Part shown: in pieces, positions 1-27,271 of the stretch | Layout: each line of letters opens with the position of its first letter | Position numbering within the stretch: the first letter of the stretch is position 1 | Source: Ascoidea asiatica JCM 7603 | Lineage: Eukaryota; Fungi; Ascomycota | Assembly: GCA_001600695.1 (NCBI GenBank) | Contig: BCKQ01000006.1 | Coordinates: forward strand, 653,710-680,980 | DNA: 27,271 bases | Direction of reading: 5' to 3' | The notes under the pieces: model-generated | Databases searched by the model: none | What the model was told of the DNA's origin: nothing | The model's input: the letters and a program-made list of their open reading frames with translations, nothing else | Program-made: the position numbers and the translations under genes

Positions 1-1665
1 AACAAAATTGAACAATCAGATGAAACAATAAGCTTTATATCCGATTTTTCTCCAAGTATAATCAACATACAAAATCACGAAAAAGAAAATTATAAGATTC
101 TGAATAAAAGAAACAGATCAACTTCTTTATTATCCATCAGTGAATCTTGTTTCAATAACAAAACTAAAAGTCGTACTAGTAACAATCATCATCATAATAG
201 TAATAATGCTGATAACTTAAATAATGATAGCTTCAATAGTAGTATTAGAAGTATCAGAAGCATAAGCAGAAACAATAGTATTAAAAGCACAAATAGTGGA
301 GGGAGGATTAAAAGTGTGGTTTGCAACATGAGTGTTTCTAGTCTACCAAAGCAGAGTATGAACTTGAGTAGTGCCAATTTAAGTATCAAAAGTATCAACG
401 CTAGTCTTAGAGGAATTGAGGATAAAAAAAATGGAGTTCATGTTCATAATAAATCAAACCTTAGTAATTCTGTTGGTAATTTTGGTAATATTCACAATGA
501 AAGTGGCTCTTCTTTGGGTAACATGGTTTCATCGAGATTCAGTTTCACTCCTTCCATTGCAATAAATGTCATTGACCCTTCAAATGAAAGAAGAACAATA
601 CTGAGATCAAAAGGTAGTAAAGCATATAAATCAATTCGATTATATAAAAAAGATAATAAATCTAAAAGCAAAGAAGATATAATATTCAGAAAAGACAAAA
701 ATACATCATTTGATAAAGTCAATAGAGATTTATATATTCATACAAACAATGATATTTCCGAAATCAAAAGAAATATGTTGGATCTGGGTAGAGGAAATGG
801 AACACAAAAACATAATAAATTCAAGAATCTGTCTAAAATGAGAGTAGAGGTTGCTCTGAGAGAATCTGAAAGAGAGAAACATGGAGATGATAATTATAAA
901 GGTATACAAACAAAAACTAGAGGTAGTCTGAAACCTTTGAGACTGAAGAAGCTGTTTGAGAATTTACGTAATCCACTGTTGAGTAAGAAGACAATTAAAA
1001 ATGTTGATACTAAGAATACCGAAAGTGTTAATGACAAGGAGAAAATAAATACAACCACCATCGGTGCTAATAACAATACAAAGGGGAGTCAAATTAGAGA
1101 TAGTGAAAAGGTAATCGATGACCAAATTGAAAAAGTAAAAAGCCAGGTTCCTGATATTGAGAATAATAAGAAAGATAAAAGGAATACTACTATGGATGCT
1201 AGCATTGATGTCGAGGATAACAAGTCTCTCAAAGATATTATTGATGAAGTTTATCTTTACGATGAAGGAGAGGTATATACCAGTGTGAAAGTTGGCGTGA
1301 GTAGTATAGATTTCGCTGATAGCTGTTTTAGCTATGAGAGTAGTCTGAATGAAAAAAGTAAAGAAAGTGAGATCAGTGAGATTACTGAAACTACCAATAC
1401 TGCAGATAATACCGGAAGCAGAAGCAGTGAAGAGAGTAGTAAGAGCAAGAAAGATGAACTAGCTAGCTTACTTCAGAAGGCCAAGAAACAGGAATTGAAT
1501 ATGATGTTTACAGATGATTATATGAAAGGGATACATAAAGGTCAATATTCCAACGTAGCTGAACTCATCAATGAAAGCCATCATAGAGAATCTAAAAAAA
1601 TTGGAAGGAGATTCTCGAAATGCTTTAAGTTTTTTAAAAGCAAGTCTGAGCTTATAGAAGTTTGA
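1..1665 (+). CDS. 5'-partial hypothetical Ser/Asn/Lys/Glu-rich, largely disordered protein (copy A, inside left IR arm)
   Basis: Frame 1 is stop-free from base 1 (NKIEQSDETISFISDFSPS...) to TGA 1663-1665, 554 codons. The ORF-track start at 316 is an internal GTG. No recognisable domain; basic/aromatic C-terminus KKIGRRFSKCFKFFKSKSELIEV. Confidence 0.8.
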   Translation, partial: NKIEQSDETISFISDFSPSIINIQNHEKENYKILNKRNRSTSLLSISESCFNNKTKSRTSNNHHHNSNNADNLNNDSFNSSIRSIRSISRNNSIKSTNSGGRIKSVVCNMSVSSLPKQSMNLSSANLSIKSINASLRGIEDKKNGVHVHNKSNLSNSVGNFGNIHNESGSSLGNMVSSRFSFTPSIAINVIDPSNERRTILRSKGSKAYKSIRLYKKDNKSKSKEDIIFRKDKNTSFDKVNRDLYIHTNNDISEIKRNMLDLGRGNGTQKHNKFKNLSKMRVEVALRESEREKHGDDNYKGIQTKTRGSLKPLRLKKLFENLRNPLLSKKTIKNVDTKNTESVNDKEKINTTTIGANNNTKGSQIRDSEKVIDDQIEKVKSQVPDIENNKKDKRNTTMDASIDVEDNKSLKDIIDEVYLYDEGEVYTSVKVGVSSIDFADSCFSYESSLNEKSKESEISEITETTNTADNTGSRSSEESSKSKKDELASLLQKAKKQELNMMFTDDYMKGIHKGQYSNVAELINESHHRESKKIGRRFSKCFKFFKSKSELIEV

Positions 1666-1734
1666 GTTCTTATTATGCAAATCTATTCAATCAATTGCGT
1701 AATGAAATATGTAATGAAATATAACGAAATATAA
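1..1734 (+). repeat. Left arm of long inverted repeat (pairs with 25538..27271); may extend beyond the window
   Basis: Position x mirrors 27272-x without indels: ORFs 316..1665/25607..26956 and 1468..1680/25592..25804 are exact mirrors. Manual comparison found only two substitutions: 646 A vs G and 904 A vs C. Confidence 0.98.
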
Positions 1735-1781
1735 TGATATATAACCAAATATAATGAAATATAATGTAATATAATGAAATT
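1700..1781 (+). repeat. 10-bp minisatellite, consensus TAATGAAATA (left copy)
   Basis: One unit at 1700, a TG spacer, then seven units from 1712: taatgaaata, taacgaaata, taatgatata, taaccaaata, taatgaaata, taatgtaata, taatgaaatt. Confidence 0.9.
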
Positions 1782-1808
1782 TTAATAGTTGTATTTTAAA
1801 AGGCTTTT

Positions 1809-1985
1809 TTGAAAGTCGAGCTCGGAATGAACCTAAACCCTAATTACGCTTAAGCTTGAAAACTCGAAAACTTCGAGATTAAAGTTTAGCTCTTTAAATA
1901 CATTATATTTGTTTCATTAAAAACATTGAAAACTATTGTTTCTAATGATAGTTTTTGTTTGACAGTATAAGTGAATTGCCTGGCC
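1809..1985 (+). repeat. Diverged inner extension of the inverted repeat (about 80% identity to reverse complement of 25283..25446)
   Basis: 1809..1923 (...aacctaaaccctaatt...taagcttgaaaactcgaaaacttcgagattaaagtttagctctttaaatacattatatttgtttca) aligns by eye with RC of 25331..25446 (...aacctaaaccttaatt...taagcttgaaatttcgaaaacctcgatattaaagtttagctttttgaatgcattatatttgtttca). A weaker match continues to about 1985. Confidence 0.85.
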
Positions 1986-2950
1986 ATCTTTTATAAATAT
2001 TTTTGAGATTTACTTTGTTGCTTATCAATCAAAGTCTAGAAAATTTCTTACCCAACGATATCTAACTTACCATTATATTATCGCTTATAGCTTATTTTTA
2101 AAGTGACGATTACATATTAGGTGATTCTATAATCTCTAATGAATGATACACAGACTACAAGCAATATCGACATGTTTACACAAAATTAATCGGAAGTGAT
2201 ATCAATAGATGCTACTCTGTAAATATCAAGTCAGAACAATAATAAAAATACCGAGATTTTCAGTAATAACAAACGAAAAAATAATAGTCCATTTATAGAG
2301 CAGAAATTTGAAGTAATCCTGGAAAAATGTCTTGAGAGCATTTGAAAAAGAGAAATGGTATGCAAAAATACATTTTGGTTGATATACATTGCTTATCATA
2401 AAAATCACTTCTTCAATGAGCGATACTATCGCCTATGGTGGATGTGCTTTTTTTAATCGTAAGCAATACTATCACAGATATATAATCAGCATAGTGACTA
2501 TAAAAACTCTTTCATTTAGACACAGTATTTTTTTTCTTTTGAGAGTTATTCTCGATTGAATCAATAGGCTTGCTTCTTGAAAAGATCAAGGATAGATTGA
2601 CAAAGTTTTACAAAGCCAAAGGTGGTTACATAATAGAAATAGACGAGCAGCCAAATTATCCAGAATATTTAGAACAAATTTCTCATAGAAATTTAATCGA
2701 AGAAACTAAAAAAACTTTAAAATATATCTATTTAATGTAAGTATAAAGAAGTATAAATCATAACTAAGTTAAAAGAGTACATAAAAAGAAAAATGTATAA
2801 TTATAAATTTCTATAAAAAAATTTCTAAAATACTTTAAGTCTCCAAATAGGTTAACTAACTATTTTCATATTATTTAGTAATAAATATTTCTTTCAAAAT
2901 ATTATTCATTAATGACAAATCAAAATGGATAAGTATTCAGGAAATATTTT

Positions 2951-4141
2951 TTACTCAATTATGGGCTTTCCAATTCTTTTTTCTTCAATTTGTTTATCAT
3001 ATATTTTTTCATTGCTCGAATTATAATTAGTGTAAGTATTATAGCCATAATTATAGTGAGAAGTAAAAGTGCTAAAATCCCAATTGGTATTTAATGTTAA
3101 GTTATTTTTAAATCTAAAAATTAAATCAGGATTTGAAATGAATAATTTTCCAAAACCAATCAAAGTTCTTTTTTCAACATTATCTGAATTTAAATCATTT
3201 TCAATTAATTTATTATCGGGATACATAAAATAATAATAAGAATTAATTCTGATTAAAATACCTTTCCAATATTTTAAAATCCAATTATTACCATGAATTC
3301 TTGATAATAAATTGCTTTCATTTTTTGAATTTGAAGAAGGAATTGAAATTTTAGATTCAATAATAGAAATATAAGCTAGTTGTTTTTCTGTGCTATTGTT
3401 TGATAAATTTTGTAAATATTCTAAAAGATATTTATAATCTTGAATAATTTGATTTTTAACTGAATTATCAATTTTTAATCTAATTTCACCACTTGACCAA
3501 GGAGATAATCTTAAACCGATTTTATTATAGTCTATGACTTGGCCAATTTCATTAATAATTTCAATTAATAATCTTGACCTATTTATTATACTTTCACCAG
3601 AATATACAGATAATTGATCATTTTTTTGAATTGAATTTGTCTTATGGTGTAAGAAACAGTGTAATAAATTTCCATAACATGATTGAATTTCTATACCGTC
3701 AGCTTTAGCTAATTTAACTGAATTTATAGCTGAAGTCACAAAACTTTTTTTAAGTGAAATAATATCTTTTAAAGTTTTCAATTCACTAAATTCATAAGGT
3801 GAATAGAGTTGAAAGAATATGAAAGAATTATTTGAATGAATTTTTTTTGTAATTTCAAACCAGTTTTTAATTTGAATATCATTATAGATTCCAGGAATGT
3901 GATTAGTATTAGGTGTCAAATTTTCAGGAGCTGAAACTAAAATGGCTTCAGAAATTAATAAAGTGCCTGGTTCTTTTGACCTGTCGTCATAATGTTTCAA
4001 CATTAAATCCGTTGGTATTCCATCAATTGTTGCTCGATTTCTAGTCAATGGAGCCATAACTATCCGATGCTTCAAGTTTATTGAATGCCCATCATCTTTA
4101 ATAGGAAGTGAGATTGGTTTAAAAAGCAAATCAGGAAGCAT
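2951..4141 (-). CDS. Old Yellow Enzyme (flavin oxidoreductase / NADPH dehydrogenase) family protein with degenerate active site
   Basis: OYE motifs LKHRIVMAPLTRNRA, PGTLLISEA, PGIYNDIQ, ADGIEI, NRSRLLIEII, IGLRLSPW, TLIGFGKLFISNPDL, GYNTY. The catalytic EIHSANGY motif reads EIQSCYGN here. Confidence 0.92.
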   Translation of the reverse strand: MLPDLLFKPISLPIKDDGHSINLKHRIVMAPLTRNRATIDGIPTDLMLKHYDDRSKEPGTLLISEAILVSAPENLTPNTNHIPGIYNDIQIKNWFEITKKIHSNNSFIFFQLYSPYEFSELKTLKDIISLKKSFVTSAINSVKLAKADGIEIQSCYGNLLHCFLHHKTNSIQKNDQLSVYSGESIINRSRLLIEIINEIGQVIDYNKIGLRLSPWSSGEIRLKIDNSVKNQIIQDYKYLLEYLQNLSNNSTEKQLAYISIIESKISIPSSNSKNESNLLSRIHGNNWILKYWKGILIRINSYYYFMYPDNKLIENDLNSDNVEKRTLIGFGKLFISNPDLIFRFKNNLTLNTNWDFSTFTSHYNYGYNTYTNYNSSNEKIYDKQIEEKRIGKPIIE

Positions 4142-4434
4142 AAAGTATTAAGAAACAGACTGTAGTTTTATAATTCAAACCACCTTTTTAAAATGTAATA
4201 TAAAAAAGAGATAATCCTCGATAGATAAAAAAATACAAAAACAATAAGGATAATAAAGTTAACTTAGACTTTAACTCCCTTTTTTATTAAAGTTTGGCGT
4301 TCAATGCAGACTGCGCCACAGCCCGGCTTTTGAAAATTTAAGCCTCATTCTTGAAGCTGTGTATTAACGTTAGTTATTGTTGCTTCGTGTTGTGTGATGT
4401 ATTAAGCACCTCTTTCGAAAGCTAGCGGCATAGC

Positions 4435-4469
4435 CACGTGCAGTTGCAGAAACCGGTGGCCGTTACCCG
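4435..4469. promoter_or_regulatory. Candidate bHLH E-box (CACGTG, 4435-4440) and Reb1-type site (TTACCCG, 4463-4469) in the GC-rich core of a divergent promoter
   Basis: Exact motif matches in a GC-rich patch (about 4295-4500) between the divergent starts at 4141 and 4783. Function is inferred from S. cerevisiae Cbf1/Pho4/Tye7 and Reb1 consensus sequences. Confidence 0.45.
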
Positions 4470-4782
4470 GCTCCCTCCGTGAAAATTCTGGTTCTGCCTC
4501 AAGTCTCAAATTTAGGTAAATGCTGTGGATTTTATTCGATTTTGTTCAGTTCAACGTATTTTACTCAATTTTACCCAGTTTGATTCTATCTCTTGCAAAT
4601 TCACTCTATTCTAAATTAATCTAGTCTTATTCAATTGAACTAAATAAACCTACTTTTATTCTTATCCTTTAAAATTAATAGTACTCTTCATAATTATTAT
4701 ATTTTCTTCATTGTTTATAACTTTTTTTCTAATAATAATCACGAGAACAACAATAATATAATCTATTTTTTTTTTTTTCAAA

Positions 4783-6150
4783 ATGACTTCGCAATCGAAA
4801 AAACATTCAAACGATCATCTTATTCATAGACCAAAAAGTTTTTCCTCTCAAGAAGAAATGATATCTGCATTTGCTTTATCAAATCCAACTCCAAGAAGAG
4901 CTTCTAATTTAAATCAAGGTGATATTATCATTAACGATTCTTTTGATAATGAAAATCTTAATGACATTGATGAAATCAATATCGATAATATGGATAATTT
5001 AGATAATATTTCAACTGCTTCTCCCACTTCTTTCACCAACTTAGATTCTTTCAATAATCAAAGTTCTGATATAACCTCTAATAATAATAATGACAATTCT
5101 ACTAATAATACTAATAGTAATACCAATAATATTACAACCAGCGATACTAATACTACCAATAATAATTCGAACAATAACAATAGTAATACTAATACCAATA
5201 GCAACACTGCTAAAAGTAATTATCTATCTGCATCCAATTTAAATTCTTACAATAAAAATCAAATCAATTTAAATAAAAATTATATCTCTTCAACTGCTGC
5301 TTCAATAGCTTCTTCTGATGCTGTTGACTTATTATCAAATTCAATTAATACAAATCCTTCAAATAATTTAAATACAATAAATTCTGCAAATTCAATAGTT
5401 ATATCTAAATCAACAAGTAATTTTACTCCTTTAATTCATTCAACTTCTGTTAGTAGTAATATAATCAATAACAATAATATCAACAATAATAACTCTTTAA
5501 AAGTAAATAATTTAAATAATTTAAATAACTCAAATAATTGGTCAAGTATTTCTTTAGCAAATTCAAATCAATTATCAAGAAATTCTTCAACTTCAAATTT
5601 ATCAACAATTGCAACAAAAGATGGTATTTTAGGTAAAAAAGCTGTTTCAAAATTCAATATTAATAATTTTAATTATAATAATTCAAATTATAGTAATAGT
5701 ATACATAATTATAATCATAATTATAAATTAAATAACTTTAGAAACAATAATAATGATATTAATAACAATAATAATGATGTTGATGATGATCTTGATAACG
5801 ATGATGATGATGATTTATCAGATATTGAAATGGGCTCAAATGATAATAATATTAACTCAAATCATAAAGAAATTAATAATGATATTATTAGTGAAGCTAG
5901 TAATGATAGCAAAGATATAAATCGTAATGAAAATAATGTTTCCTATTACCAAAATAATAATAATATTGATATTAATAATCCAAAAGAATCTAGTTTAAAA
6001 TCAAAGTCTTCTTCTGGTAATGTTATCAATAACAATAATAATTTTATCCTGCAAAACCATCAACAATTATTCATTAAAAGAAATGGCTCCAATTTAACTC
6101 TAGGTGCAATGAGTGATGATATCTCTGTTGATGATTATCCCAAATATTAA
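4783..6150 (+). CDS. Hypothetical Asn/Ser-rich low-complexity protein (455 aa)
   Basis: Long ATG-initiated ORF with A-rich start context and host-like codon use. Short complex segments HRPKSFSSQEEMISAFALSNPTPRRAS and LSRNSSTSNLSTIATKDGILGKK; no family recognised. Confidence 0.8.
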   Translation: MTSQSKKHSNDHLIHRPKSFSSQEEMISAFALSNPTPRRASNLNQGDIIINDSFDNENLNDIDEINIDNMDNLDNISTASPTSFTNLDSFNNQSSDITSNNNNDNSTNNTNSNTNNITTSDTNTTNNNSNNNNSNTNTNSNTAKSNYLSASNLNSYNKNQINLNKNYISSTAASIASSDAVDLLSNSINTNPSNNLNTINSANSIVISKSTSNFTPLIHSTSVSSNIINNNNINNNNSLKVNNLNNLNNSNNWSSISLANSNQLSRNSSTSNLSTIATKDGILGKKAVSKFNINNFNYNNSNYSNSIHNYNHNYKLNNFRNNNNDINNNNNDVDDDLDNDDDDDLSDIEMGSNDNNINSNHKEINNDIISEASNDSKDINRNENNVSYYQNNNNIDINNPKESSLKSKSSSGNVINNNNNFILQNHQQLFIKRNGSNLTLGAMSDDISVDDYPKY

Positions 6151-6482
6151 GAATAAGAACTCAATTTATATACCCTCTTTTGATTCTTTAAACTTTTACT
6201 CTTTTAATTATTTGCTTTTTCTCTTTTCAAAATTTTCAATTCTTCCTATTATATTTTTTTTTTCTGTTATTTACTTTTACTTTCTTTTTGGGGTTCTATC
6301 GTTTTTAATTGTGTTGTTTCTTTTTTGTTCTGGTTCTTATTTCGTTCAATATCAATTTAATTGAATTTTACAAGTTATCCTTAATTTCTATTTATTTGGA
6401 ATATCTTTATCTTTAAAGTTAAATTAAATTAAAAATTTCTATAATCTATAATACACTAATATTTTCTTTATTATATTCTATT

Positions 6483-8522
6483 TTAATTAGATTTATTTGG
6501 AGACGAAACTCTTTCAACAATTCTAAATATTGATATTGTAAAAGTTCCAACCCAAGTTATTAAAATTAAAAATAAAAAGCAAGCTAAAGCTCTTTGAGTA
6601 TCACAGATTTCGCTAATTTTAAGACTAGTCAGTGATAAAGTTCTAATTAATAATCTCAGAAATTTAGTTTTTTGAAATGATTTAGATTCATCATTTGATA
6701 AACTATTTGATTCAGCTTTCAATTGATTTAAAGAACTAACGCAAACCCATTGATCATCATATAAAGTATTGAAAGTTAAAGATAAGTTTGCAGAAGAAAA
6801 AATTATGAATAATAAATCTAAAGAAATTAATTTAATTTTATCCATTGGATTTCTTAACCCAATTTGTTGACCACTATATTCATCATGAGTTATATATAAT
6901 ATATAAATTAAAGCAATACTTTGAACACAAATTGACATTATTGTACTTGGTTGTTGACTAATTTTCTCAACAGTATTATTTTTTGAAGATACAAAAACAG
7001 AGCATGCTAAAGCTAACGCAATTACACTTAATAAAAAAGTTATAGATCTTAAAATAACTAAGATATATGGACTTGATAAGCAAATTCTTTTAAAAGCAGG
7101 TTTCCAACGTTCTCTTTGTTCTGAAGCCATCCAGTATTTTGCTGTAGATCTAATTTTTGGAGGTTTATCAGTATTTTTTCTTGATCTTCTTGGAGAATTT
7201 TTATTATAATCGGTACTTGTATTAAATTTTCTTTTCAAACGTTCATCACCTTCCCATTCTCCAGATAAATCTGCTAATTGATATTCTTCATGTTGTATAG
7301 AAGAAGAATCGAATTTTTGTAAAGAATCTTCTGTGGAAGTTGAAGTATAAGTATTATAGTGATTTTCATTTTCATTTATTATAGACAGTGGGATTCTATT
7401 TTGTATATTGTTTTTAGTATTTTTATTAAATTCATCATTGGAATTATTTTCATTATTTAGAAAATTATTGTGATTATCATCTTCTAAATTATTTATACCG
7501 TTTGAAGAAGGATTGTTAATAAAAGAAGATCTTAAAATTGCAGGTGTATTTTTAATTGTTGATATAAAATTACCCCAATTATCATTTAAAGACGATACAA
7601 ATAAATCTTTATTTTCATAAGTTGAATTTTCTTTTGTTGAATTTGCATAAGATTGTGATAAAGATGGAGAATAAGTGGTTGAAAAATTAGATAGAGTAGA
7701 TTGATGATTTGATCTTGAAGGTAGTAAAGAATCAGAATTAAAATTATCAGAATTTTTAAAGTGAGCTTTTGATATACTATCTAATACAAAAGGGGGGACA
7801 GTTGTTGCCTCATGATTATAATGATTCATAATTGAATTTGAAGATGTATCATTGTTATTATTATTATTATTGATGTTATTTAAGTTGTTATTATTATTAT
7901 TAGGAGCAGTATTATTAGTTATTGTGCTTAAAGGTAATATTGAATTTATATTTGAAGCTGAAAAATTTCTACTTTGAGGAGGCAGTAGAAGTATATCAGT
8001 TCTCAATGTATTACTACTAGTCATAGTATTTATATTATTTATATTAAGTTTACTTGATTGATTATTTGATTGAGGTAATAATTGATTTGAAGAATAAGTT
8101 AGATTAGGAGAAGCCAATTGTTTATTTGTGTTTAAAGTATTTAATGTTGATGATGAATCAGGGATTATATTCTGTATTGAATTTTGATTTGCAGAATTAC
8201 TTTTTTGTCTTGGAGTTTCAAATATATTATTTTCACTATTTATATTGTTTATTTCATTTATGTTGTTTATGTTGTCAATATCGTTTATATCGTTTATGCT
8301 TTTCTTACTATTATTACTGTAAGAGACCGTACTATTATTATTGTTATTACTATTGTTATTATTATTAGGATAAATTTCTGAAATAAATTTTGATTTACTC
8401 TCTGATTTATTATCTGAATTATTTTCTATATTATAATTTTGATTTGAATTTGAATTATATACGAAGTCTAAAATATCAATATGATTGTTTGAGTTATTTG
8501 AGTTGATATTATTTGAATCCAT
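6483..8522 (-). CDS. SRF1: Regulator of phospholipase D Srf1-like membrane protein
   Basis: Asn-rich N-terminus with TVPPFVL motif. C-terminal four-TM domain with QQPSTIMSICVQSIALIYILYITHDEYSG..IGLRNPMDKIKLISLDLLFIIFSSANLSL, WVC and ICDTQRALACFLF, as in fungal Srf1. Confidence 0.82.
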   Translation of the reverse strand: MDSNNINSNNSNNHIDILDFVYNSNSNQNYNIENNSDNKSESKSKFISEIYPNNNNNSNNNNNSTVSYSNNSKKSINDINDIDNINNINEINNINSENNIFETPRQKSNSANQNSIQNIIPDSSSTLNTLNTNKQLASPNLTYSSNQLLPQSNNQSSKLNINNINTMTSSNTLRTDILLLPPQSRNFSASNINSILPLSTITNNTAPNNNNNNLNNINNNNNNNDTSSNSIMNHYNHEATTVPPFVLDSISKAHFKNSDNFNSDSLLPSRSNHQSTLSNFSTTYSPSLSQSYANSTKENSTYENKDLFVSSLNDNWGNFISTIKNTPAILRSSFINNPSSNGINNLEDDNHNNFLNNENNSNDEFNKNTKNNIQNRIPLSIINENENHYNTYTSTSTEDSLQKFDSSSIQHEEYQLADLSGEWEGDERLKRKFNTSTDYNKNSPRRSRKNTDKPPKIRSTAKYWMASEQRERWKPAFKRICLSSPYILVILRSITFLLSVIALALACSVFVSSKNNTVEKISQQPSTIMSICVQSIALIYILYITHDEYSGQQIGLRNPMDKIKLISLDLLFIIFSSANLSLTFNTLYDDQWVCVSSLNQLKAESNSLSNDESKSFQKTKFLRLLIRTLSLTSLKISEICDTQRALACFLFLILITWVGTFTISIFRIVERVSSPNKSN

Positions 8523-9243
8523 GATTGAAAAAGAATGAGCTAAAAAATTGGCTAAATATGAAATGTAAATAAAATGTAAATAAAATGTCTTGAATTAATG
8601 AGCTTTTTGTCTTAGAATATGTTTGAAAGGGACTGTGGAATAAGAATAGGGAGATTATTAGTACTAATTATTTATAGTATTGGGTATTATTGAATTAAAT
8701 TATCTTCTAAGGGTGCTGAAACAAAATATTAATCAATCGCTCAATCAATTATCAAATAAAGAATATAAAGATAAAGATAAAAGGAATAAATAAATGAATA
8801 AATAAAGAATGAATAAAGGAACGAATAGATAAAGAAGTAAATAAATAAAAGCAAATTCACCAAAACAGAGGATTTTCTTTATATTTGGGCCTATTTTGAT
8901 AACGTTACGAGGTTTTGTAAGGAACGTATTTTTCACTCTTGATATGTTGATACGACCACAAAACAGGTCTAAAACACTTAATTTTTCAAAAATGGAAGTT
9001 ATGGAAGAAAGTTAATTCAAATGAGTACAATATTGTCACAACAATGAATGTCAGTATGAATGACATTATCTTTATTATTCAAATGCTACTTTATTTACAA
9101 TATAATAAAGTTATTTAACTAGTCTGGAGAAGTATTTTTATTTGAAGTGTTCTTTTATTAAAAATAGTTATGATATATAAAATATAGATTATATAAATTA
9201 TACAATATATAATGAGACATAAATCACTGAATTAGTTATTTAT

Positions 9244-18264: not shown

Positions 18265-20577
18265 CCTATTTACAGTTTTATAAGTGTAAATGAAAATTAT
18301 GATCCAAAAACAGGTTCAAAATTAAGTAAAAAATCAGTAAAACAAAATAAACAACCTTTAAATAATTCAAATTATTTAATATCTGATAACAATAATAAAA
18401 ATATTAATAATCAATCAAATTCAAATTCAAATTCAAATTCAAATAGTACTAGTACTAGTACAAACACCAATTATATTCATTTATTAAGTGCAACTAAAGA
18501 AACTACAAATTATAATTATACTTCCGCAATGCCAATCTCAACAAAACCAACTTTCAATGTAACTTTAAATAAATCAAAAAGAAATCATAGAATGGTAAAA
18601 CAAATTAATAAATCAAATAATAATAATAATAATAATATTAATATTAATAATAATAATAATAATAATAACACTTCTAAATCTTTGAAATCAATCAAAAATG
18701 TAAATAATTCAAATAACATAAGTAATATAAGTAATATAAGTAATACCAATAATCTTTCAAGTAATATAAATAATGTAAATAATATAGATAATAATGATCA
18801 TAAAGAAGGTGGTGTAGATCAATTAATGAAAACTTTCATTGATCAATTATTTCTTAAACCAAACCTTTCAAATTCTCATTTATCAAATACATCAAATACA
18901 TCAAATAATAACTCAAATAATAGTTCAAACAATATTTCAAATGATAGTCCAAATAATTCAAATACAATAATACCCATAAAAAAGTCAAAAATTGTAACTT
19001 TACAATATAATAAACAAAAATTATTACAAAAAAATAATTCAAACTTATCTCAAAAAAAAAAAAAATTATCACCGAAATTAACTTCTAAATTATTTAAATC
19101 TGATAACTCTGTTAAATCTTCTCAATCTATACCCATATCTATACCTACATCTATACCTACACCTTTGCAATTACCATCATCAATACCATTACCATCATCA
19201 GTACCTTTACCATCTCCATCCCCATTACCATTGTCTTTACCAACTAATACAAACTTAAATGGAAAGTCAAAGTTACTAAAACCAACAAAAACTATTCTAA
19301 AATTAAAATCTCCAAAATCAAAGTATATGTTGAAAAAAGAAAAAGAAAAAGAGCGACAATTGCAAATACAAAAGGAAAAAGAAATAGAAAAAGAAAAGGA
19401 AAAACAAAGAGATAAACGAAAATTAAAACAAAAACAAAAACAGAAACAAAGAGAAAGATATAAACCAAATGTCAAAATTAATGTAAATGAAAAAATTAAA
19501 CTTTCATATCCTGAAAAATATCCAATATCAATTTCTGATAATAAAAATTATGATAAAATAATTTTAAATTCTAAAAAAGTTGATCAATTATCTCCTTTGA
19601 ATATAAATCCTTCAATTTTTTTAAATAATTTAAATAATTATAATTTAAATATTCCATTAATATCTTCTTCATTATTATTATCTTCTGATGATAATTCTTC
19701 TGATAATGAAAGTGAAAATAATGATATTGAAGAGGAATATGATAATGAAAAAAAGAATGTTAATAATATTATCACTTCAAATTCCATTCTTAATGATTCT
19801 ATAAAAGAAAATAAATTAAATGAAGCCAATTTTATTGAAAATTCTCAGAATATTATAAAAATTTTAATATTTTATAAAAAAATTAATAAATTATTAAATG
19901 AACAAATTAGAAAAAAACAAAAACAGCCAACACCTTCCTCATTATCGTCATCCACAGCAATATCATCCTCTATTTTACTTCCACCACCATCGTCATCATC
20001 ATCACCACCTCCCTCCCATGTTAGAAGTAATGGTAAAACCAGTAAAAATTACAATGACAAAAATGATACTTATTCTAATGATAATAATTATAATAACTAT
20101 AATGATAACAATGATAATTATAGCAACAATAAAAAAAATTTATTTTCTAAAAAAAGTATATCATTATCTCCAAGAATCAACAAACCTAAAACAAAAACTC
20201 GGCAAACTTCTTTGTCTCCAGCAAGAAATCTTAATTCATTACAATCAAAGATTAAAAAAACTACAAAATTATTAAATTCAAAAGTTCCATTACCAGATAT
20301 AGACTTCTATTGTTCTCAAAAAGCAATGGATTTATATACAAAACAAAAACATGATTCAAGTCTAATAAGCGTAGATAATATTAACAATATTGATTCAACT
20401 TCAAGAGTTTTAAGAGAAAGATTGCCATTTTCTGAGAAAAAAATTAGTAACGCCAATCAATCTTTGGGTGATCTTATTAAATGCCCTTTTTATTATCTAG
20501 TGATTAAAACTCCAAAAGTTAGAGTAGATGCTAATGAATCACAATTTATTGTAAAGATTAGAAAGATTAACTCATAG
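18169..20577 (+). CDS. Hypothetical Asn/Lys/Ser-rich protein (802 aa)
   Basis: Long ATG-initiated ORF with (AAT)18 polyN at 18208-18261, a PLPSS-type Pro-rich tract, a KE/KQ coiled-coil-like tract and a more complex C-terminal segment (PLPDIDFYCSQ...LIKCPFYYLVIK). No family recognised. Confidence 0.8.
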
Positions 20578-21271
20578 TTTGTTTAAACATGATTAATATC
20601 ATCAAAGCAGAAAGTATAAAAAAGAAAAAAAACTTTTATTTTACCCCAAACTATTTATTTAAGATAGAATTTACTAATTCTTTTCATTTCTCATTTTTTT
20701 ATTTGTTTTTGCTTTTTCTTTTTCTAATTTTAGTACTTCTTTTTCATCTTTCTATATAATTTTTTTATTTCTGTCATATATTATATTACTTTTAAAATTC
20801 CTTTCATATTTTATCTCTTTTCCTTTATACTATAGACTATATAACAAAAATACCATTGGTTCCTTTTTTTTGCTTTGTTTGGCTAAAGTTTTTTCATTTT
20901 TCAATCAATTAACTTTGTAAATAATAATAAATAAGTGTAATTAAAAACAAAAATTAAAATTGATTTCCAAAATATTCTATTCATTTATTTCATTAGTATG
21001 AATTTCGGTTAAATAATTAGCATTTTGATAATTTATTAGCCTTTCATACCTTTTTGTATGCGGAGTGATTTTTTCGTTTTCAGACAAACCAAGAACAAAT
21101 TATTAACATATGAGAATGGGTGCTTTGACATTTTATGTTAAAATATATCTATACTATTAACTGGTTTTAAAGGAATTTCAGAAGTAGTATTATTAGTTTA
21201 CATAATTTCAAAAAAGTATAATCAACCCTTTTTGTCTTTTTTATTTCAAGCAAGTGAAAGAATTGAAAAAA

Positions 21272-22876
21272 ATGAGCTCAAAACTATTGGCTCAATCCAC
21301 CAGAACTTTAGGATTAATTACTAAAAGAGGATTATTGAGTAGTAGATGTTTAAATTCCATCAAACCATGCAATTTTAAGAGAAGTCTTGCAAGTGCTTCA
21401 TTCAGTGAAAGAATTCCTTCAGGGGTATCTGCTGGGCAAGCAATGCATGAAACAAGACCAGCAATGCTAAGTGCTGGAGAATTAACCCCAGGAATAAATG
21501 CCATTGAATATTATGAAAGAAGGCTAAAGCTAGCTTGTTCAATGGAGAGTGAATCAATTGCCATTATTCCCGGAAATGTGGTTAAATATGCTTCTGGAGC
21601 TGTATTTTATAAGTTTCAACAAAACACTGACTTGTTTTATTTAACTGGTTGGAATGAGCCTGAATCTTTAATGATTTTAGAAAAAAAAGATAACAATGAA
21701 ACTGATGATAGTATTATTTTGCATATGTTAGTTTTACCAAAAAATGAATTCAAAGAAAAATGGGAAGGACCTAGAACTGGTGTCAATGGTGTAATGGAAA
21801 TGTTTAATGCTGATCAGGCTAGATCAATAGACGATCTTGAAGACTATTTACATCGATTGATAACAAGAAATAAAAACATTTATTATGATTTTCCAAAAAA
21901 TTCTTACAAACCATCGATGTTTGAAAATTTTTTTGGGTCAACGATAAATGCTTCAGAAAAATCTGGAAAAAGAGAAGCTACAATAGAAAAACTTTTAAGA
22001 GAAAACAGTAGTGGAAAAAAACTTCATCCATTGACATCCTTGGTTTCCCAGATGAGAGCAGTGAAATCAGAAAGTGAATTAAAAATAATGAGAAGAGCTG
22101 GTCAAATATCTGGTAGAACATATAACAAAGCATATTCTCAAAGATTCAAAAATGAAAGAACATTGGCATCATTTTTGGAATATGGATTTGTTTCTGGTGG
22201 TTGTTCAGGGCATGCATATATACCAGTAGTTGCCGGCGGACCAAATTCTTTATCTATTCATTATACTAGAAATGATGATGTTTTATATAATAATGAAATG
22301 GTTTTAGTTGATGCAGCTGGTAAACTTGGTGATTACTGTTCAGATATTTCAAGAACTTGGCCAAATAATGGTAAATTTACTGAACCACAACGAGAATTAT
22401 ATGAAATTGTTTTAAATGTAAATAGAGAATGTATTAAATTATGTTGTTCAAATAATGGTCTTTCATTATTAGATATTCATAGAACAAGTACAGATTTGAT
22501 GTATGAATCTATTAAAAAATTGAGTGGATTTCAAGATATTTCGAAATATGAGTTTACAAATGTTTTATATCCTCATTCAATTGGACATAATTTAGGTCTT
22601 GATGTTCATGATGTTCCAAATTATTCAAATTCAAGAAAATTAAAAGAAAATCAAGTTATAACAATTGAACCAGGTATTTATGTTCCTGATGATATAAAAT
22701 ATCCTTCTTGTTATAGAAATATTGGTATAAGGATTGAAGATAATGTTGCAGTTGGAAAAGATTCGTATACAGTATTAACTTCAGAAGCTGCCAAAGAAGT
22801 ATGTGATATTGAAAATATTGCTAAAAATGGGGTCACAACTAATTATGAGGAAGATGTAATTAATATTTTATCATAA
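21272..22876 (+). CDS. ICP55: Mitochondrial intermediate cleaving peptidase 55 (aminopeptidase P, M24B family)
   Basis: Arg/Ser/Leu-rich presequence; AGQAMHETRP..GELTPGI..EYYERR; metal ligands in DAAG...YCSDISRTW, HSIGHNLGLDVHD, TIEPG, GIRIED. ATG at 21272 is preferred over the GTG at 21254. Confidence 0.95.
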   Translation: MSSKLLAQSTRTLGLITKRGLLSSRCLNSIKPCNFKRSLASASFSERIPSGVSAGQAMHETRPAMLSAGELTPGINAIEYYERRLKLACSMESESIAIIPGNVVKYASGAVFYKFQQNTDLFYLTGWNEPESLMILEKKDNNETDDSIILHMLVLPKNEFKEKWEGPRTGVNGVMEMFNADQARSIDDLEDYLHRLITRNKNIYYDFPKNSYKPSMFENFFGSTINASEKSGKREATIEKLLRENSSGKKLHPLTSLVSQMRAVKSESELKIMRRAGQISGRTYNKAYSQRFKNERTLASFLEYGFVSGGCSGHAYIPVVAGGPNSLSIHYTRNDDVLYNNEMVLVDAAGKLGDYCSDISRTWPNNGKFTEPQRELYEIVLNVNRECIKLCCSNNGLSLLDIHRTSTDLMYESIKKLSGFQDISKYEFTNVLYPHSIGHNLGLDVHDVPNYSNSRKLKENQVITIEPGIYVPDDIKYPSCYRNIGIRIEDNVAVGKDSYTVLTSEAAKEVCDIENIAKNGVTTNYEEDVINILS

Positions 22877-22918
22877 CTTGTATATATATAAATATATAAA
22901 TATTAACATTTGAAAGTT

Positions 22919-24706
22919 TCATTGATTTAAAAAAGATTTAAGTAATTCACTTTGTAAATGAATAACATTTGTTGAAAATTCATTTTGTTCATTGATTTGA
23001 ATTAATTTATCATGGAATTTTTGGTTTGAGAGTTTTGAAATTTTATCATTATAACCAATAAATTCAATAATTCTATCCACTAAATTAATTTTAATATTTA
23101 AATTTAATATTAAAGAAATATTCATTAAATCATCTATTATAATATTTTCATCAATATCTAATCTTTTTGATAAATCTTCAATTTTGATTTTTTTAATTGT
23201 TGAAAGAAAAATTATATAAATTCTATATCTAATCATTAATTTATAATGAATAAATTGATTATTATTCACTTTAATATCACTGTTTCTAAATTTTTTAATA
23301 CTATCAATCATTTTATTAGATTTTTTTGAAGCAGTAAAATGAAGTTCATTGAAATTTAAGTTATTTAGAATATAAGTATTATCAAATTGAATTAAAATAT
23401 CACTAATTTTATTGAAATTTGTTGGATTTAATAGAGAATCAAATAATTTTGAAACTATGATATTTTCTGAGATATAATTATCTAATATATTTATATTTGA
23501 AATGTAACTTTTAAATTCTTTAACATTTGAAGTTATAAATAAAGAAAGTAAAACAGATAAAATTATATCATTTGAATTAATACAATTTGGAAAATTTTCA
23601 TTTATATTATCATTACTATTCATAAATAAACAAAGTTTATTACTTTCAAAAGAATTAAATTTTGAAATTAAAACATCTAATGGAGATATTTTAAAATCAT
23701 TTAATTCAGATTGAATTAATAATTGTCTTTTATTTTCAGGATCTGAATCACTATCAATATGACTATAATTTTTTTTATAATCTAATAAATCTAAGAAATT
23801 CAGTTTAACGTCATAATAATTACCAAGTTTAAATTGTGCAAATAATATTATCCATTTAATTTTCCAATAAATTTCAACATCATTTGAAGAATTAAAAATA
23901 GTAATATTTGAAAGATCTAAATTTTGTTTTATAATCGAATAACTTTTCAGTAATGTTTTTGATCTAATAGATAAAGAGAATATATTTGAGAATAAAATTT
24001 TTAATTCATTTTCTATTGAGATAATTTCAGTATAATCTGAGTTCACATAATCAATATAAGCTTTTAATTGAAATTGTTCTAATTGAAGAGTGCCTTTGAT
24101 TTTTTTAACCACTTTATTATCATTAGTATTATTATAATAATTATTATCATACTCAACTTTTTTCTCTTTGTAAAGTTTATCATTCAATAATTTTATAAAA
24201 GTGGATTGATAGGAAGTATTAGTTAATTGAGCTTCATGTTGAAATAAATTAAAGAAATTTAAATTGAGTGAATCATAGAATAATTGATTTATGGAAAAAG
24301 AATTCAATAAGTCCATGACTGTTTTTTTTTCATTTGGTAAATTTTCTCTCAAAGAAGTAGACTTTGAATTAAAATTATCAATAAATAAATCTAAATCAAC
24401 ATTTAATTTAAACTCAGGATTTAAAATTTCAGTTAAATTCAAATCAAGAAACTCGGATAGATTTTCCAAATTGATTAGATTTATAGAAGGTTTCTGATTT
24501 GAATTTTTGGATTGAATTGAATCTTTGAAATGTAATAAGTAAACTGAAGGAATTTCATGTTTTTGAATTAATTTTATGGCAATAATTGATATAGTTGCAG
24601 ATAAAGAAGGATATTGAATAGTGAGAAAATATAAAATTTCAAATATGATTGGACCTTGATAGCTCTGAAGTACTTTGATGAGATCCAAATCGAATTGTTC
24701 ATCCAT
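22919..24706 (-). CDS. Divergent PCI-domain protein, probable COP9 signalosome subunit (Csn1/Pci8-like)
   Basis: Helical Leu/Ile-rich 595-aa ORF. The C-terminal IRYRIYIIFLSTIKKIKIEDLSKRLDIDENIIIDDLMNISLILNLNIKINLVDRIIEF fits the PCI winged-helix pattern. Subunit identity is inferred. Confidence 0.6.
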   Translation of the reverse strand: MDEQFDLDLIKVLQSYQGPIIFEILYFLTIQYPSLSATISIIAIKLIQKHEIPSVYLLHFKDSIQSKNSNQKPSINLINLENLSEFLDLNLTEILNPEFKLNVDLDLFIDNFNSKSTSLRENLPNEKKTVMDLLNSFSINQLFYDSLNLNFFNLFQHEAQLTNTSYQSTFIKLLNDKLYKEKKVEYDNNYYNNTNDNKVVKKIKGTLQLEQFQLKAYIDYVNSDYTEIISIENELKILFSNIFSLSIRSKTLLKSYSIIKQNLDLSNITIFNSSNDVEIYWKIKWIILFAQFKLGNYYDVKLNFLDLLDYKKNYSHIDSDSDPENKRQLLIQSELNDFKISPLDVLISKFNSFESNKLCLFMNSNDNINENFPNCINSNDIILSVLLSLFITSNVKEFKSYISNINILDNYISENIIVSKLFDSLLNPTNFNKISDILIQFDNTYILNNLNFNELHFTASKKSNKMIDSIKKFRNSDIKVNNNQFIHYKLMIRYRIYIIFLSTIKKIKIEDLSKRLDIDENIIIDDLMNISLILNLNIKINLVDRIIEFIGYNDKISKLSNQKFHDKLIQINEQNEFSTNVIHLQSELLKSFLNQ

Positions 24707-25282
24707 AATAAAGAAGTTTAGTCGCTGTTTAAATTGCCAAAGAAGAGAATTATGAAGTTATTATTTCAGTAAAGATGAATTGATGATTTATATTCAAACC
24801 AACTTTTGGAATAACAATAGATATACTAAAACTAACCATTGCAATTATAATTCAAGTAATTAAGTTTATTGTTATTTAATTCCGCCACAAGAAACAAAAA
24901 AAAAAGAAAACACCCACAAAGCTGGTCTCTACTTGTAGCATATGCGTAATATACATACACGCACAGATTTCAGCATATAGTATAATCGATTTTTTGAATA
25001 AATCTGGGTCCAAAGCCGATTTCATTCATTTCATTATTGTTAAAAAATTGATCAATCTTATAATAGTTTATTTATAATCTAAAAAGCAATTTTAAAATCA
25101 GATTAGATAAAGAAAGCTTATCCTATAATCTAGTGACTATCACCAAACAATTGTTTTTCGTATTTAGAAATATTTACATTTGGGAAAATCAAGATTTTTT
25201 AAGATAAAAAATATTTTGAAAGCACATCATAAAAGTAATCAAGTTCGATATTATTATACTGGTAAAAAATCAACATGTCTAT

Positions 25283-25446
25283 AACCAGAAGAGCTCTTAT
25301 ATACTCAAACAAAAAAAAATAAAGTAATAATTTTCAGTGAAACAAATATAATGCATTCAAAAAGCTAAACTTTAATATCGAGGTTTTCGAAATTTCAAGC
25401 TTAGACGTGAATTAAGGTTTAGGTTTACTCGTAGCTTGGGTTTCAA
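25283..25446 (-). repeat. Diverged inner extension of the inverted repeat (right copy; partner of 1809..1985)
   Basis: Reverse complement aligns at about 80% with 1809..1923 and more weakly to about 1985. Confidence 0.85.
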
Positions 25447-25490
25447 GAAATTTTTATAAATTACTACTACAAATAATAACTTAAAAAAAA

Positions 25491-25572
25491 AAATTCATTA
25501 TATTTCATTATATTTGGTTATATATCATTATATTTCGTTATATTTCGTTATATTTCATTACATATTTCATTA
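25491..25572 (-). repeat. 10-bp minisatellite, consensus TAATGAAATA on the minus strand (right copy)
   Basis: RC units after the TG spacer: taatgaaata, taacgaaata, taacgaaata, taatgatata, taaccaaata, taatgaaata, taatgaattt. Confidence 0.9.
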
Positions 25573-27271
25573 CGCAATTGATTGAATAGATTTGCATAAT
25601 AAGAACTCAAACTTCTATAAGCTCAGACTTGCTTTTAAAAAACTTAAAGCATTTCGAGAATCTCCTTCCAATTTTTTTAGATTCTCTATGATGGCTTTCA
25701 TTGATGAGTTCAGCTACGTTGGAATATTGACCTTTATGTATCCCTTTCATATAATCATCTGTAAACATCATATTCAATTCCTGTTTCTTGGCCTTCTGAA
25801 GTAAGCTAGCTAGTTCATCTTTCTTGCTCTTACTACTCTCTTCACTGCTTCTGCTTCCGGTATTATCTGCAGTATTGGTAGTTTCAGTAATCTCACTGAT
25901 CTCACTTTCTTTACTTTTTTCATTCAGACTACTCTCATAGCTAAAACAGCTATCAGCGAAATCTATACTACTCACGCCAACTTTCACACTGGTATATACC
26001 TCTCCTTCATCGTAAAGATAAACTTCATCAATAATATCTTTGAGAGACTTGTTATCCTCGACATCAATGCTAGCATCCATAGTAGTATTCCTTTTATCTT
26101 TCTTATTATTCTCAATATCAGGAACCTGGCTTTTTACTTTTTCAATTTGGTCATCGATTACCTTTTCACTATCTCTAATTTGACTCCCCTTTGTATTGTT
26201 ATTAGCACCGATGGTGGTTGTATTTATTTTCTCCTTGTCATTAACACTTTCGGTATTCTTAGTATCAACATTTTTAATTGTCTTCTTACTCAACAGTGGA
26301 TTACGTAAATTCTCAAACAGCTTCTTCAGTCTCAAAGGTTTCAGACTACCTCTAGTTTTTGTTTGTAGACCTTTATAATTATCATCTCCATGTTTCTCTC
26401 TTTCAGATTCTCTCAGAGCAACCTCTACTCTCATTTTAGACAGATTCTTGAATTTATTATGTTTTTGTGTTCCATTTCCTCTACCCAGATCCAACATATT
26501 TCTTTTGATTTCGGAAATATCATTGTTTGTATGAATATATAAATCTCTATTGACTTTATCAAATGATGTATTTTTGTCTTTTCTGAATATTATATCTTCT
26601 TTGCTTTTAGATTTATTATCTTTTTCATATAATCGAATTGATTTATATGCTTTACTACCTTTTGATCTCAGTATTGTTCTTCTTTCATTTGAAGGGTCAA
26701 TGACATTTATTGCAATGGAAGGAGTGAAACTGAATCTCGATGAAACCATGTTACCCAAAGAAGAGCCACTTTCATTGTGAATATTACCAAAATTACCAAC
26801 AGAATTACTAAGGTTTGATTTATTATGAACATGAACTCCATTTTTTTTATCCTCAATTCCTCTAAGACTAGCGTTGATACTTTTGATACTTAAATTGGCA
26901 CTACTCAAGTTCATACTCTGCTTTGGTAGACTAGAAACACTCATGTTGCAAACCACACTTTTAATCCTCCCTCCACTATTTGTGCTTTTAATACTATTGT
27001 TTCTGCTTATGCTTCTGATACTTCTAATACTACTATTGAAGCTATCATTATTTAAGTTATCAGCATTATTACTATTATGATGATGATTGTTACTAGTACG
27101 ACTTTTAGTTTTGTTATTGAAACAAGATTCACTGATGGATAATAAAGAAGTTGATCTGTTTCTTTTATTCAGAATCTTATAATTTTCTTTTTCGTGATTT
27201 TGTATGTTGATTATACTTGGAGAAAAATCGGATATAAAGCTTATTGTTTCATCTGATTGTTCAATTTTGTT
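25538..27271 (-). repeat. Right arm of long inverted repeat (pairs with 1..1734); may extend beyond the window
   Basis: Reverse complement of 1..1734 with two substitutions (26626, 26368). The last base of the window mirrors the first. Confidence 0.98.
25607..27271 (-). CDS. 5'-partial hypothetical Ser/Asn/Lys/Glu-rich protein (copy B, inside right IR arm)
   Basis: Mirror of 1..1665, open to the window edge. Differs from copy A by K->E (LYKKD/LYEKD) and I->L (KGIQT/KGLQT). Confidence 0.8.
   Translation of the reverse strand, partial: NKIEQSDETISFISDFSPSIINIQNHEKENYKILNKRNRSTSLLSISESCFNNKTKSRTSNNHHHNSNNADNLNNDSFNSSIRSIRSISRNNSIKSTNSGGRIKSVVCNMSVSSLPKQSMNLSSANLSIKSINASLRGIEDKKNGVHVHNKSNLSNSVGNFGNIHNESGSSLGNMVSSRFSFTPSIAINVIDPSNERRTILRSKGSKAYKSIRLYEKDNKSKSKEDIIFRKDKNTSFDKVNRDLYIHTNNDISEIKRNMLDLGRGNGTQKHNKFKNLSKMRVEVALRESEREKHGDDNYKGLQTKTRGSLKPLRLKKLFENLRNPLLSKKTIKNVDTKNTESVNDKEKINTTTIGANNNTKGSQIRDSEKVIDDQIEKVKSQVPDIENNKKDKRNTTMDASIDVEDNKSLKDIIDEVYLYDEGEVYTSVKVGVSSIDFADSCFSYESSLNEKSKESEISEITETTNTADNTGSRSSEESSKSKKDELASLLQKAKKQELNMMFTDDYMKGIHKGQYSNVAELINESHHRESKKIGRRFSKCFKFFKSKSELIEV

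Follow-up and report, generated by a model that had tools for sequence, protein, structure and literature searches.

Does a block of genes enclosed by near-identical inverted repeats in the genome of Ascoidea asiatica act as an invertible genetic switch, or is it a passive product of duplication? The locus lies on the 1.15-Mb contig C6, where the window, that is, the whole 27,271-bp stretch of DNA analysed here, corresponds to C6:653710-680980, which leaves 654 kb of the contig on one side and 472 kb on the other. FF1 flip/flop loci are known from Ogataea polymorpha, Pachysolen tannophilus and Ascoidea rubescens (PMC6692504, PMC5720833), and their inversion proceeds by homologous recombination, with no site-specific recombinase (PMC6692504). 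A. rubescens, the sister species, inverts a 44-kb MAT region between 2-kb inverted repeats, and strains differ in its orientation (PMC6692504). A preliminary description of the A. asiatica locus had raised the possibility of a comparable switch unrelated to mating type, in which the block would be turned round by recombination between its flanking repeats, exposing the genes near its ends to a position effect.

Extent of the inverted repeat

Sequence comparison confirmed the inverted-repeat architecture, and the repeat proved to be bigger than first described. Inside the window, the two arm cores are reverse complements of each other with exactly two substitutions, at positions 646/26626 and 904/26368. 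Both arms extend ~1.8 kb past the ends of the window, covering window positions -1798..1923 on the left (3,722 bp) and 25331..29099 on the right (3,769 bp). The sole differences in this outward portion are a 16-bp and a 13-bp indel; over the whole 3.53-kb core, the left and right arms thus differ by two substitutions and two short indels and are 99.9% identical. The two cores are 23,803 bp apart. In the inner flanks (189 bp on the left, 207 bp on the right) the identity falls to ~75-80%, with 154 matches in 207 aligned columns. No other repeats of at least 150 bp were found within the 107 kb around the locus. The features are listed in Table 1.

Table 1. Features of the inverted repeat and the enclosed block. 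Positions are those of the window; negative values lie before its first nucleotide.
Feature	Position	Strand	Remarks
Left arm, full core	-1798..1734		C6:651911-655443
Left arm core, window portion	1..1734	+	2 substitutions relative to right arm; twice the k-mer depth
Orphan 611-aa gene, left copy	-170..1665	+	ORF; codons 58-611 inside window
Left inner flank	1735..1923	.	Decayed homology; begins in 10-bp minisatellite at ~1700-1781
Single-copy block	1924..25330	.	23,407 bp; eight ORFs, one 3.8-kb ORF-free stretch
OYE-like FMN oxidoreductase	2951..4141	-	Pfam Oxidored_FMN PF00724, 1.5e-42
455-aa ORF	4783..6150	+	No Pfam family match
679-aa ORF	6483..8522	-	Sub-threshold Anoctamin match only
SUA7 / TFIIB	9244..10248	-	PF00382, 3.9e-47; PF08271, 2e-12
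NAM8-like RRM protein	12436..14391	-	Pfam RRM
ORF-poor stretch, 3.8 kb	14392..18168	.	No ORF of at least 100 aa; 36%-GC segment at ~16200-17750
802-aa low-complexity ORF	18169..20577	+	No Pfam family match
ICP55, mitochondrial aminopeptidase	21272..22876	+	Pfam M24 and AMP_N
595-aa ORF	22919..24706	-	No significant Pfam or PDB match
Right inner flank	25331..25537	.	Decayed homology to left inner flank
Right arm core, window portion	25538..27271	-	Full core 25538..29099
Orphan 611-aa gene, right copy	25607..27442	-	ORF
BDH1-like gene, intact	28646..29941		3' 453 bp inside right arm, past 1.2 kb of upstream DNA

Content and copy number of the arms

Each arm contains an intact 611-aa orphan gene, its 1.2-kb upstream region and the last 150 codons of a BDH1-like gene. 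The arm is thus made up of this ORF, the BDH1 fragment and intergenic DNA, a composition other than that of a transposon, tRNA or LTR, and searches of the arm returned no tRNA, Rfam or transposase matches. A 611-codon open frame would occur by chance with a probability of ~2e-26 at the local base composition, and both copies are intact, the encoded proteins differing only by K273E and I359L. The one clear functional effect of the duplication would appear to be that the orphan gene is present twice, each copy intact and with its promoter. BDH1 residues 282-431 are copied in the left arm at 100% identity, and the outer edge of the arm is sharp and falls inside BDH1. As a complete BDH1-like gene occurs only at the right arm, that arm is the parent copy. 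Counting somewhat against GC-biased conversion, which would predict raised GC3 in the arm, the GC3 of the BDH1 part is only slightly higher within the arm (6.7%) than outside it (2.5%). The orphan gene also has a high GC3, but this could be intrinsic to that gene.

Exactly two copies of the arm are present in the genome by both DNA and protein searches, with no diverged paralogues. The pairing is therefore not an incidental one among many dispersed copies, a caveat attached to the preliminary description.

We considered whether an arm, or the inverted placement of the two, is a product of the assembler, built from a locus that is heterozygous or occurs only once. This is a diploid strain, and inverted repeats created during assembly have been documented in yeast MAT regions (DISCOVAR, PMC6692504). 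The Nextera adaptor is present in the X2 contigs, and the assembly appears to be a short-read plus mate-pair assembly, so that the assembled orientation of the block is only as good as the mate pairs. Furthermore, the left-arm deletions of 16 bp and 13 bp were seen in none of the short-read contigs and may be assembly errors. However, the k-mer depth of the arm was about twice that of the flanks (85 vs. 44, 78 vs. 35-41 and 97 vs. 51 in Logan contigs from three runs on two samples). The Logan contigs collapse the 3.5-kb identical core, across which orientation cannot be phased, and in all three runs the collapsed arm contig forks at its outer and inner edges into single-depth contigs; on the left inner side, the fork is at 1737-1766. 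With its doubled depth and forks at both edges, the arm is neither an assembly duplication nor a mobile element. The four single-depth junction contigs, two outer and two inner, are distinct, and the inner ones enter opposite ends of one unique 23.4-kb block, so the arrangement must be inverted. The inner flanks have diverged, the arms sit inside the contig and away from its ends, and no alternative haplotigs were found for the region. We therefore regard an assembly artefact as highly improbable. In practical terms, synteny work should not rely on the orientation that this short-read assembly gives for blocks of this kind.

Genes of the block and its flanks

The gene names OYE-like, SUA7, NAM8 (here NAM8-like) and ICP55 assigned in the preliminary description were borne out by Pfam domains; the 679-aa and 595-aa ORFs had been called SRF1 and a PCI gene, names for which no significant Pfam or PDB match was obtained. 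The 3.8-kb ORF-poor stretch gave no Rfam match. Compared with A. rubescens, the NAM8-like gene is collinear, ICP55 is 67% identical, the 595-aa ORF has an orthologue at the same position and the 802-aa ORF has a weak one, while the OYE-like orthologue (46% identical) is on another scaffold. At the homologous place, A. rubescens has neither an inverted repeat nor a copy of the arm gene.

The reported absence of MAT, recombinase and transposase genes held up when examined with Pfam and a contig-wide MAT search. Pfam searches of all block ORFs revealed no MAT gene, and nowhere on contig C6 was there a match to MATalpha1, an HMG-box or a homeodomain. The A. asiatica MAT genes sit on other contigs, with MATalpha1 on C50, and the species is classed as a heterothallic diploid (PMC6692504). 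The identification as A. asiatica is based on the 71-contig assembly together with the AGE1-MATalpha1-STE20 allele. No recombinase, integrase or transposase domain was found by Pfam in the 29 larger ORFs between window positions -25.9 kb and +53.4 kb. Within ±40 kb, the flanks comprise only ordinary, densely packed genes, with no MAT gene, recombinase, transposase, telomere, retroelement cluster or gene desert.

Three known types of inverted-repeat locus could be rejected. An FF1 mating-type locus requires MATa and MATalpha at opposite ends of the block, and contig C6 carries neither. A site-specific recombinase system, such as FLP/FRT of the 2-micron plasmid or the bacterial invertons, would need a recombinase gene, and none was found among the scanned ORFs of the block and flanks. 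An inverted-repeat centromere of the kind found in Komagataella phaffii and Candida tropicalis needs a short, gene-free core, and the spacer here is 23.4 kb long with eight ORFs, including SUA7/TFIIB and ICP55.

The architecture nevertheless resembles that of FF1 loci: a single pair of partly gene-derived inverted repeats of at least ~2 kb surrounds a multi-gene block, as in the FF1-like architecture of repeats of at least 2 kb (PMC6692504). Together with the inversion in A. rubescens, this resemblance speaks for a regulated, recombinase-free, non-mating switch operated by induced recombination between the arms. Unlike FF1 loci, the A. asiatica locus has no MATa or MATalpha at the block ends and no recognisable centromere or telomere beside an arm within ±40 kb, and the species has a conventional MAT locus elsewhere. 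Nor does the proposed position effect fit the locus, which is mid-contig among ordinary genes, without a retroelement cluster or gene desert nearby. In either orientation, each block end meets the same 3.7-kb arm, so that a flip alters nothing locally. That the corresponding place in A. rubescens lacks both the repeat and the arm gene, and that similar inverted pairs occur elsewhere in the A. asiatica genome (see below), also argues against a dedicated device. A regulated switch is not supported, and we consider it very unlikely.

Origin and maintenance of the repeat

We consider it likely that the locus is an old inverted segmental duplication that has been homogenised by gene conversion and serves as a passive substrate for inversion by homologous recombination. 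A 3.77-kb segment beside BDH1, consisting of the last 150 BDH1 codons, 1.2 kb of upstream DNA, the orphan gene and ~260 bp downstream of it, would have been copied in inverted orientation 23.4 kb away, between the mIF3/AIM23-like and OYE-like genes. Duplicative insertion may have produced the copy, or it may be a by-product of an inversion. The low identity of the inner flanks, given above, points to an old duplication. The two-tier divergence itself is plain, and from this pattern we infer that 3.5 kb of the arms is kept near-identical by repeated gene conversion within the chromosome, in tracts that presumably extend inwards as far as the 10-bp minisatellite and outwards to where the homology ends. 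A recent duplication that landed on an older, short homology is a less parsimonious alternative to conversion.

Synteny with A. rubescens breaks off after the 595-aa gene, before the right arm is reached, which suggests another origin. The next A. rubescens gene, encoding a PPR protein, is 24 kb off and inverted in A. asiatica. The arms might thus be the footprint of staggered breaks, in which the inverted duplicate arose along with a past inversion of the block and the arms would mark an inversion rather than enable one. This model has been documented for Drosophila inversions (e.g., PMC3355041), in which, as here, an inverted copy of breakpoint-adjacent sequence, cut off within a gene, lies at the other end of the segment; the sharp outer edge of the arm is consistent with it. 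However, A. asiatica and A. rubescens share synteny blocks of only ~4-5 genes, so that chance alone would place a breakpoint near the arm in about one case out of four or five. The model also covers only the origin, since when the A. asiatica arms have been homogenised, and so fits alongside a later history of conversion. We think staggered breakage rather unlikely.

Conversion between inverted repeats sometimes ends in a crossover, and an occasional inversion of the 23.4-kb block by ordinary homologous recombination is therefore expected, without a dedicated recombinase. Every gene and every local junction would stay as before. The preliminary description had argued that such a crossover inverts the block harmlessly, without deletion, and the inverted architecture agrees with this. 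Most likely, then, the structure is not a regulated switch but a passive, near-neutral feature from which inversion polymorphism and rearrangement breakpoints can arise. Its neutrality is suggested by the absence of recognisable landmarks, such as a telomere, retroelement cluster or gene desert, within ±40 kb.

Relation to other inverted repeats and significance

A gene-level check of the same genome revealed further inverted gene pairs: DER1/DFM1 on C20, 11.3 kb apart, and ARP6-like genes on C16, 26.5 kb apart. A. asiatica seems to carry many gene-containing inverted pairs around 7-50-kb blocks, which favours a general property of the genome over a dedicated device. In Saccharomycopsis schoenii, which also belongs to the Ascoideales, numerous large inverted repeats occur across the chromosomes, including 8.5-kb arms at 99.98% identity, from which its authors infer a genomic tendency towards inverted-repeat formation (PMC13148404). 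Unlike the A. asiatica locus, with its 23.4 kb of housekeeping genes, the prominent S. schoenii macro-palindromes enclose or contain MAT cassettes and have spacers of 2-7 kb.

Candida albicans provides another parallel. Its ORF-containing inverted repeats are 1.7-3.2 kb long, >99% identical and 11-32 kb apart (Todd et al. 2019, PMC6591007). These long repeats are substrates for non-allelic homologous recombination and also coincide with CNV and LOH breakpoints; two inversions (~3.1 and ~32 kb) with repeats at their breakpoints were confirmed by PCR and Sanger sequencing, and the genomes of isolates predicted a further seven, all together ranging from 4 to 103 kb (PMC6591007). Both cases involve gene-containing, high-identity inverted copies on one chromosome of a diploid yeast, with no need for a dedicated recombinase. 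They differ in that A. asiatica belongs to the Ascoideales and its repeated gene is an orphan, and in that the inversions were validated in C. albicans, whereas our locus is described from its sequence.

Taken alone, the locus is an ordinary, though large and clean, conversion-homogenised inverted duplication. Its value lies in its context, since the sister species uses the same geometry for mating-type switching. A more speculative proposal, to which we give only a small chance, is that A. asiatica carries the block in both orientations, whether in a single culture or in different ones, as one of a genome-wide family of repeat-bracketed blocks in the Ascoideales that flip by homologous recombination, and that this pool was recruited for flip/flop MAT switching in A. 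rubescens. If such blocks flip, they would provide a natural system in which to measure rates of recombinase-free inversion against arm length and spacer, and to test whether flip/flop MAT switching arises when an invertible segment that already exists is captured. A standing pool of invertible segments would then help to explain the repeated evolution of flip/flop MAT switching in budding yeasts.

Extent of the Inverted Repeat

The window occupies positions 653710-680980 of contig C6 in the A. asiatica assembly G000 (G000:C6:653710-680980); the contig is 1.153 Mb long and the genome comprises 20.3 Mb in 71 contigs. The window and 40 kb on each side of it (107 kb) were compared with themselves. 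As had been described from the window sequence, positions 1..1734 and 25538..27271 are reverse complements save for two substitutions, at 646/26626 and 904/26368. The arms are longer than described there, since the homology runs on for about 1.8 kb past either end of the window. The positions of the arms and of the other features are listed in the table.

Features of the inverted-repeat locus and other inverted pairs in the assembly. Unprefixed positions are window positions, negative values and those above 27271 lying outside the window; C handles are contigs and L handles are fetched sequence pieces.
Feature	Position	Length or spacing	Description
Left arm	-1798..1923	3,722 bp	self-comparison
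Right arm	25331..29099	3,769 bp	self-comparison
Core	-1798..1734 (left)	3.53 kb	2 substitutions, a 16-bp indel and a 13-bp indel between arms
Inner flank		189 bp (left), 207 bp (right)	matches in 154/207 aligned columns; ~75-80% identity
Arm part, gene end		150 codons	3' end of a BDH1-like gene for a zinc alcohol dehydrogenase
Arm part, ORF-free		1.2 kb	no ORF, tRNA or Rfam match
Arm part, ORF		611 aa	intact
Arm part, downstream of 611-aa ORF		~260 bp	
Complete BDH1-like gene	28646..29941		only right of the right arm
ORF-free stretch	14392-18168	3.8 kb	NAM8-like gene to 802-aa ORF; no ORF of at least 100 aa
GC-rich island	30500-31000 (L009:3229-3729)		BDH1-CCS1 interval; 49-55% GC in 22%-GC surroundings, sharp
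Run of N	45992-46042 (L013:8721-8771)	51 N	between two ORFs, ~17 kb beyond the right arm
DER1-family pair	C20:168240 (+), C20:180024 (-)		gene-level check
ARP6-like inverted pair	C16:272637-273881 (-), C16:300405-301649 (+)	26.5 kb apart	gene-level check
Further ARP6-like copies	C46:11301-12545, C62:3114-4265		one per small contig

Both core indels sit upstream of the arm ORF. On the inside, the core gives way to the diverged inner flank, which begins within a 10-bp minisatellite, while the outer edge is abrupt, with no decayed homology beyond it. The self-comparison revealed no other repeat of at least 150 bp in the 107 kb. We also considered that the arms might be two of many dispersed copies, as the preliminary description had allowed, but DNA and protein searches each found the arm exactly twice in the genome, so it is neither a dispersed family nor a mobile element.

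Evidence from Short-Read Contigs

Contigs from three public runs (X1-X3, representing two samples) were aligned to a 6-kb stretch (L016) that spans the entire left arm. In the three runs, the k-mer depth of the arm against that of both flanks was 85 vs 44, 78 vs 35-41 and 97 vs 51. The collapsed arm contig extends from the outer edge to the inner edge of the core, and at each it branches to contigs of single depth. Of the inner branches, one leads to the OYE side and one towards the 595-aa gene. They enter a single unique block of 23.4 kb from its two ends, which requires the copies to be mutually inverted. No allelic alternative contigs were seen in the flanks, so the flank depth is the normal genomic depth. 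The doubled depth of the arm, the branching at its edges and the normal depth of the flanks together rule out a duplicate made by the assembler.

Block orientation is given by the pairing of outer with inner flanks, and such phasing is impossible with short-read contigs because they collapse the core. Nextera junction adaptors are present in X2, and the assembly thus probably derives from short reads of both paired-end and mate-pair libraries; the assembled orientation of the block appears to be supported by mate pairs alone.

The 16-bp and 13-bp deletions of the assembled left arm (window -368 and -275; L016:2531 and 2624) were found in no short-read contig. The longer version was present at double depth in all three runs at the 13-bp site, and in X1 and X3 at the 16-bp site, which lies outside the X2 coverage. 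These deletions may be assembly errors. A 9-bp indel at window ~-1388 (L016:1512) falls within the Thr-Ser-Glu repeat at the BDH1 C-terminus, in the portion of the arm that comes from this gene; contigs of X2 and X3 carry it, whereas those of X1 do not. Since X1 and X2 share one sample, the arm copies or homologues differ at this site, although the assembled arms are identical there.

Content and Origin of the Arms

The BDH1 sequence in the left arm is restricted to residues 282-431, at 100% identity. As the BDH1-like gene is whole only at the right arm, the left arm is derived from the right, parental one. The 611-aa ORF lies at -170..1665 in the left arm and at 25607..27442 in the right; its protein is rich in Ser, Asn and Lys, and the two copies differ only by K273E and I359L. 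An open frame of 611 codons has a chance probability of ~2e-26 at 22% GC. No homologues of the protein were found by word-indexed search, and an exhaustive phmmer search against 1.84 billion representatives returned 0; the best score in the ESM Atlas features search was 0.78, under any useful level. A Pfam match to Sod_Cu was sub-threshold and was taken as chance.

The arm gene has a GC3 of 27.5%, compared to 2-15% in most full-length neighbour genes, and contains 10 CTG codons (16 per 1000, vs ~1.6 per 1000 when the remaining ORFs in the 107 kb are pooled). CUG is decoded ambiguously in A. asiatica. In the BDH1 portion inside the arm, GC3 is raised only slightly, and GC-biased conversion was therefore not counted as independent support.

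Genes of the Block and Flanks

The earlier assignments of OYE-like, SUA7, NAM8-like and ICP55 genes in the block held, and the other four ORFs there have no family match; the names SRF1 and PCI, given previously to two of these, were not confirmed. The flanks include KAR9, PBN1, PPR genes, mIF3-like, BDH1, CCS1, an ARP gene and TFB3. No recombinase or transposase was found in the block or flanks, in agreement with the first reading of the window, nor was any retroelement or gene desert. An inverted-repeat centromere was considered and rejected, the spacer being filled with genes.

Neither the arms nor the 3.8-kb ORF-free stretch of the block yielded any ncRNA or tRNA. One half of this stretch (14.4-16.2 kb) is very AT-rich with a strong GC skew, and the other (16.2-17.75 kb) has 36% GC. 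Outside the block, the GC-rich island is overlapped by a 125-aa ORF with 4 CTG codons, and the run of N may be a scaffold gap.

The absence of mating-type genes noted earlier was upheld, there being no MATalpha1, HMG-box or homeodomain match on contig C6; the sole MATalpha1-domain match in the genome is on contig C50. In the published alpha allele of A. asiatica, which is classed as a heterothallic diploid, MATalpha1 lies between STE20 and AGE1, and A. rubescens is classed as a flip/flop switcher with 2-kb inverted repeats around 44 kb (PMC6692504).

Comparison with A. rubescens

The best match of ICP55 is in Ascoidea rubescens (67% identity). Window 12436-24706 is collinear with A. rubescens NAM8, a 5-kb gap, an 844-aa gene, ICP55 and a 550-aa gene; the collinearity is limited to NAM8 through the 595-aa gene, and A. 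rubescens is too diverged to polarise the block. The 5-kb gap is gene-free, like the 3.8-kb stretch at the equivalent position in A. asiatica; that stretch matches nothing in Rfam and is not conserved with A. rubescens at the nucleotide level.

On A. rubescens KV454489.1 (L018:11847-16578), a PPR gene comes immediately after the 550-aa gene, the orthologue of the 595-aa gene (window 22919-24706). The A. asiatica orthologue of this PPR gene lies on the other strand, 24 kb further right (window 48589-51246; L011:1318-3975). The right arm thus coincides with an interspecies synteny breakpoint, which is weak evidence, since synteny blocks between the two species comprise only 4-5 genes. The A. rubescens OYE orthologue is on a separate scaffold with unrelated neighbours, and the arm gene and inverted repeat are absent from both this locus and the NAM8-to-550-aa locus.

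Discussion

The locus is a real inverted segmental duplication, apparently maintained by conversion. The contrast between the 99.9% identical core and the 75-80% identical inner flank, together with the perfect preservation of a useless BDH1 fragment, is a well-known mark of an old duplication homogenised by gene conversion, and such conversion is the best-supported, though inferred, process. Gene conversion in inverted repeats and crossing-over proceed through common intermediates, and if the arms crossed over, the block would be inverted. Occasional inversion is therefore to be expected from what is known of recombination in yeast. Such an inversion would go almost unnoticed by the cell, since every gene would remain intact and each end of the block would abut an identical 3.7 kb of arm in both states.

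We found no support for the flip/flop switch suggested in the preliminary description. Nor did we find a basis for the accompanying proposal of a position effect on the end-proximal genes: the identical arm faces both ends, and neither 40-kb flank contains a telomere, an island of retroelements or a gene desert.

Other inverted gene pairs occur in this genome (see table); C46 and C62, which carry the further ARP6-like copies, may be haplotigs of the diploid. Known relatives of the phenomenon include the macro-palindromes reported genome-wide in Saccharomycopsis schoenii (PMC13148404), which is in the same order as A. asiatica. They also include the long, ORF-containing inverted repeats of C. 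albicans, which lie at inversion breakpoints: two of these inversions (~3.1 and ~32 kb) were validated by PCR, and seven more are predicted, 4-103 kb in all (PMC6591007).
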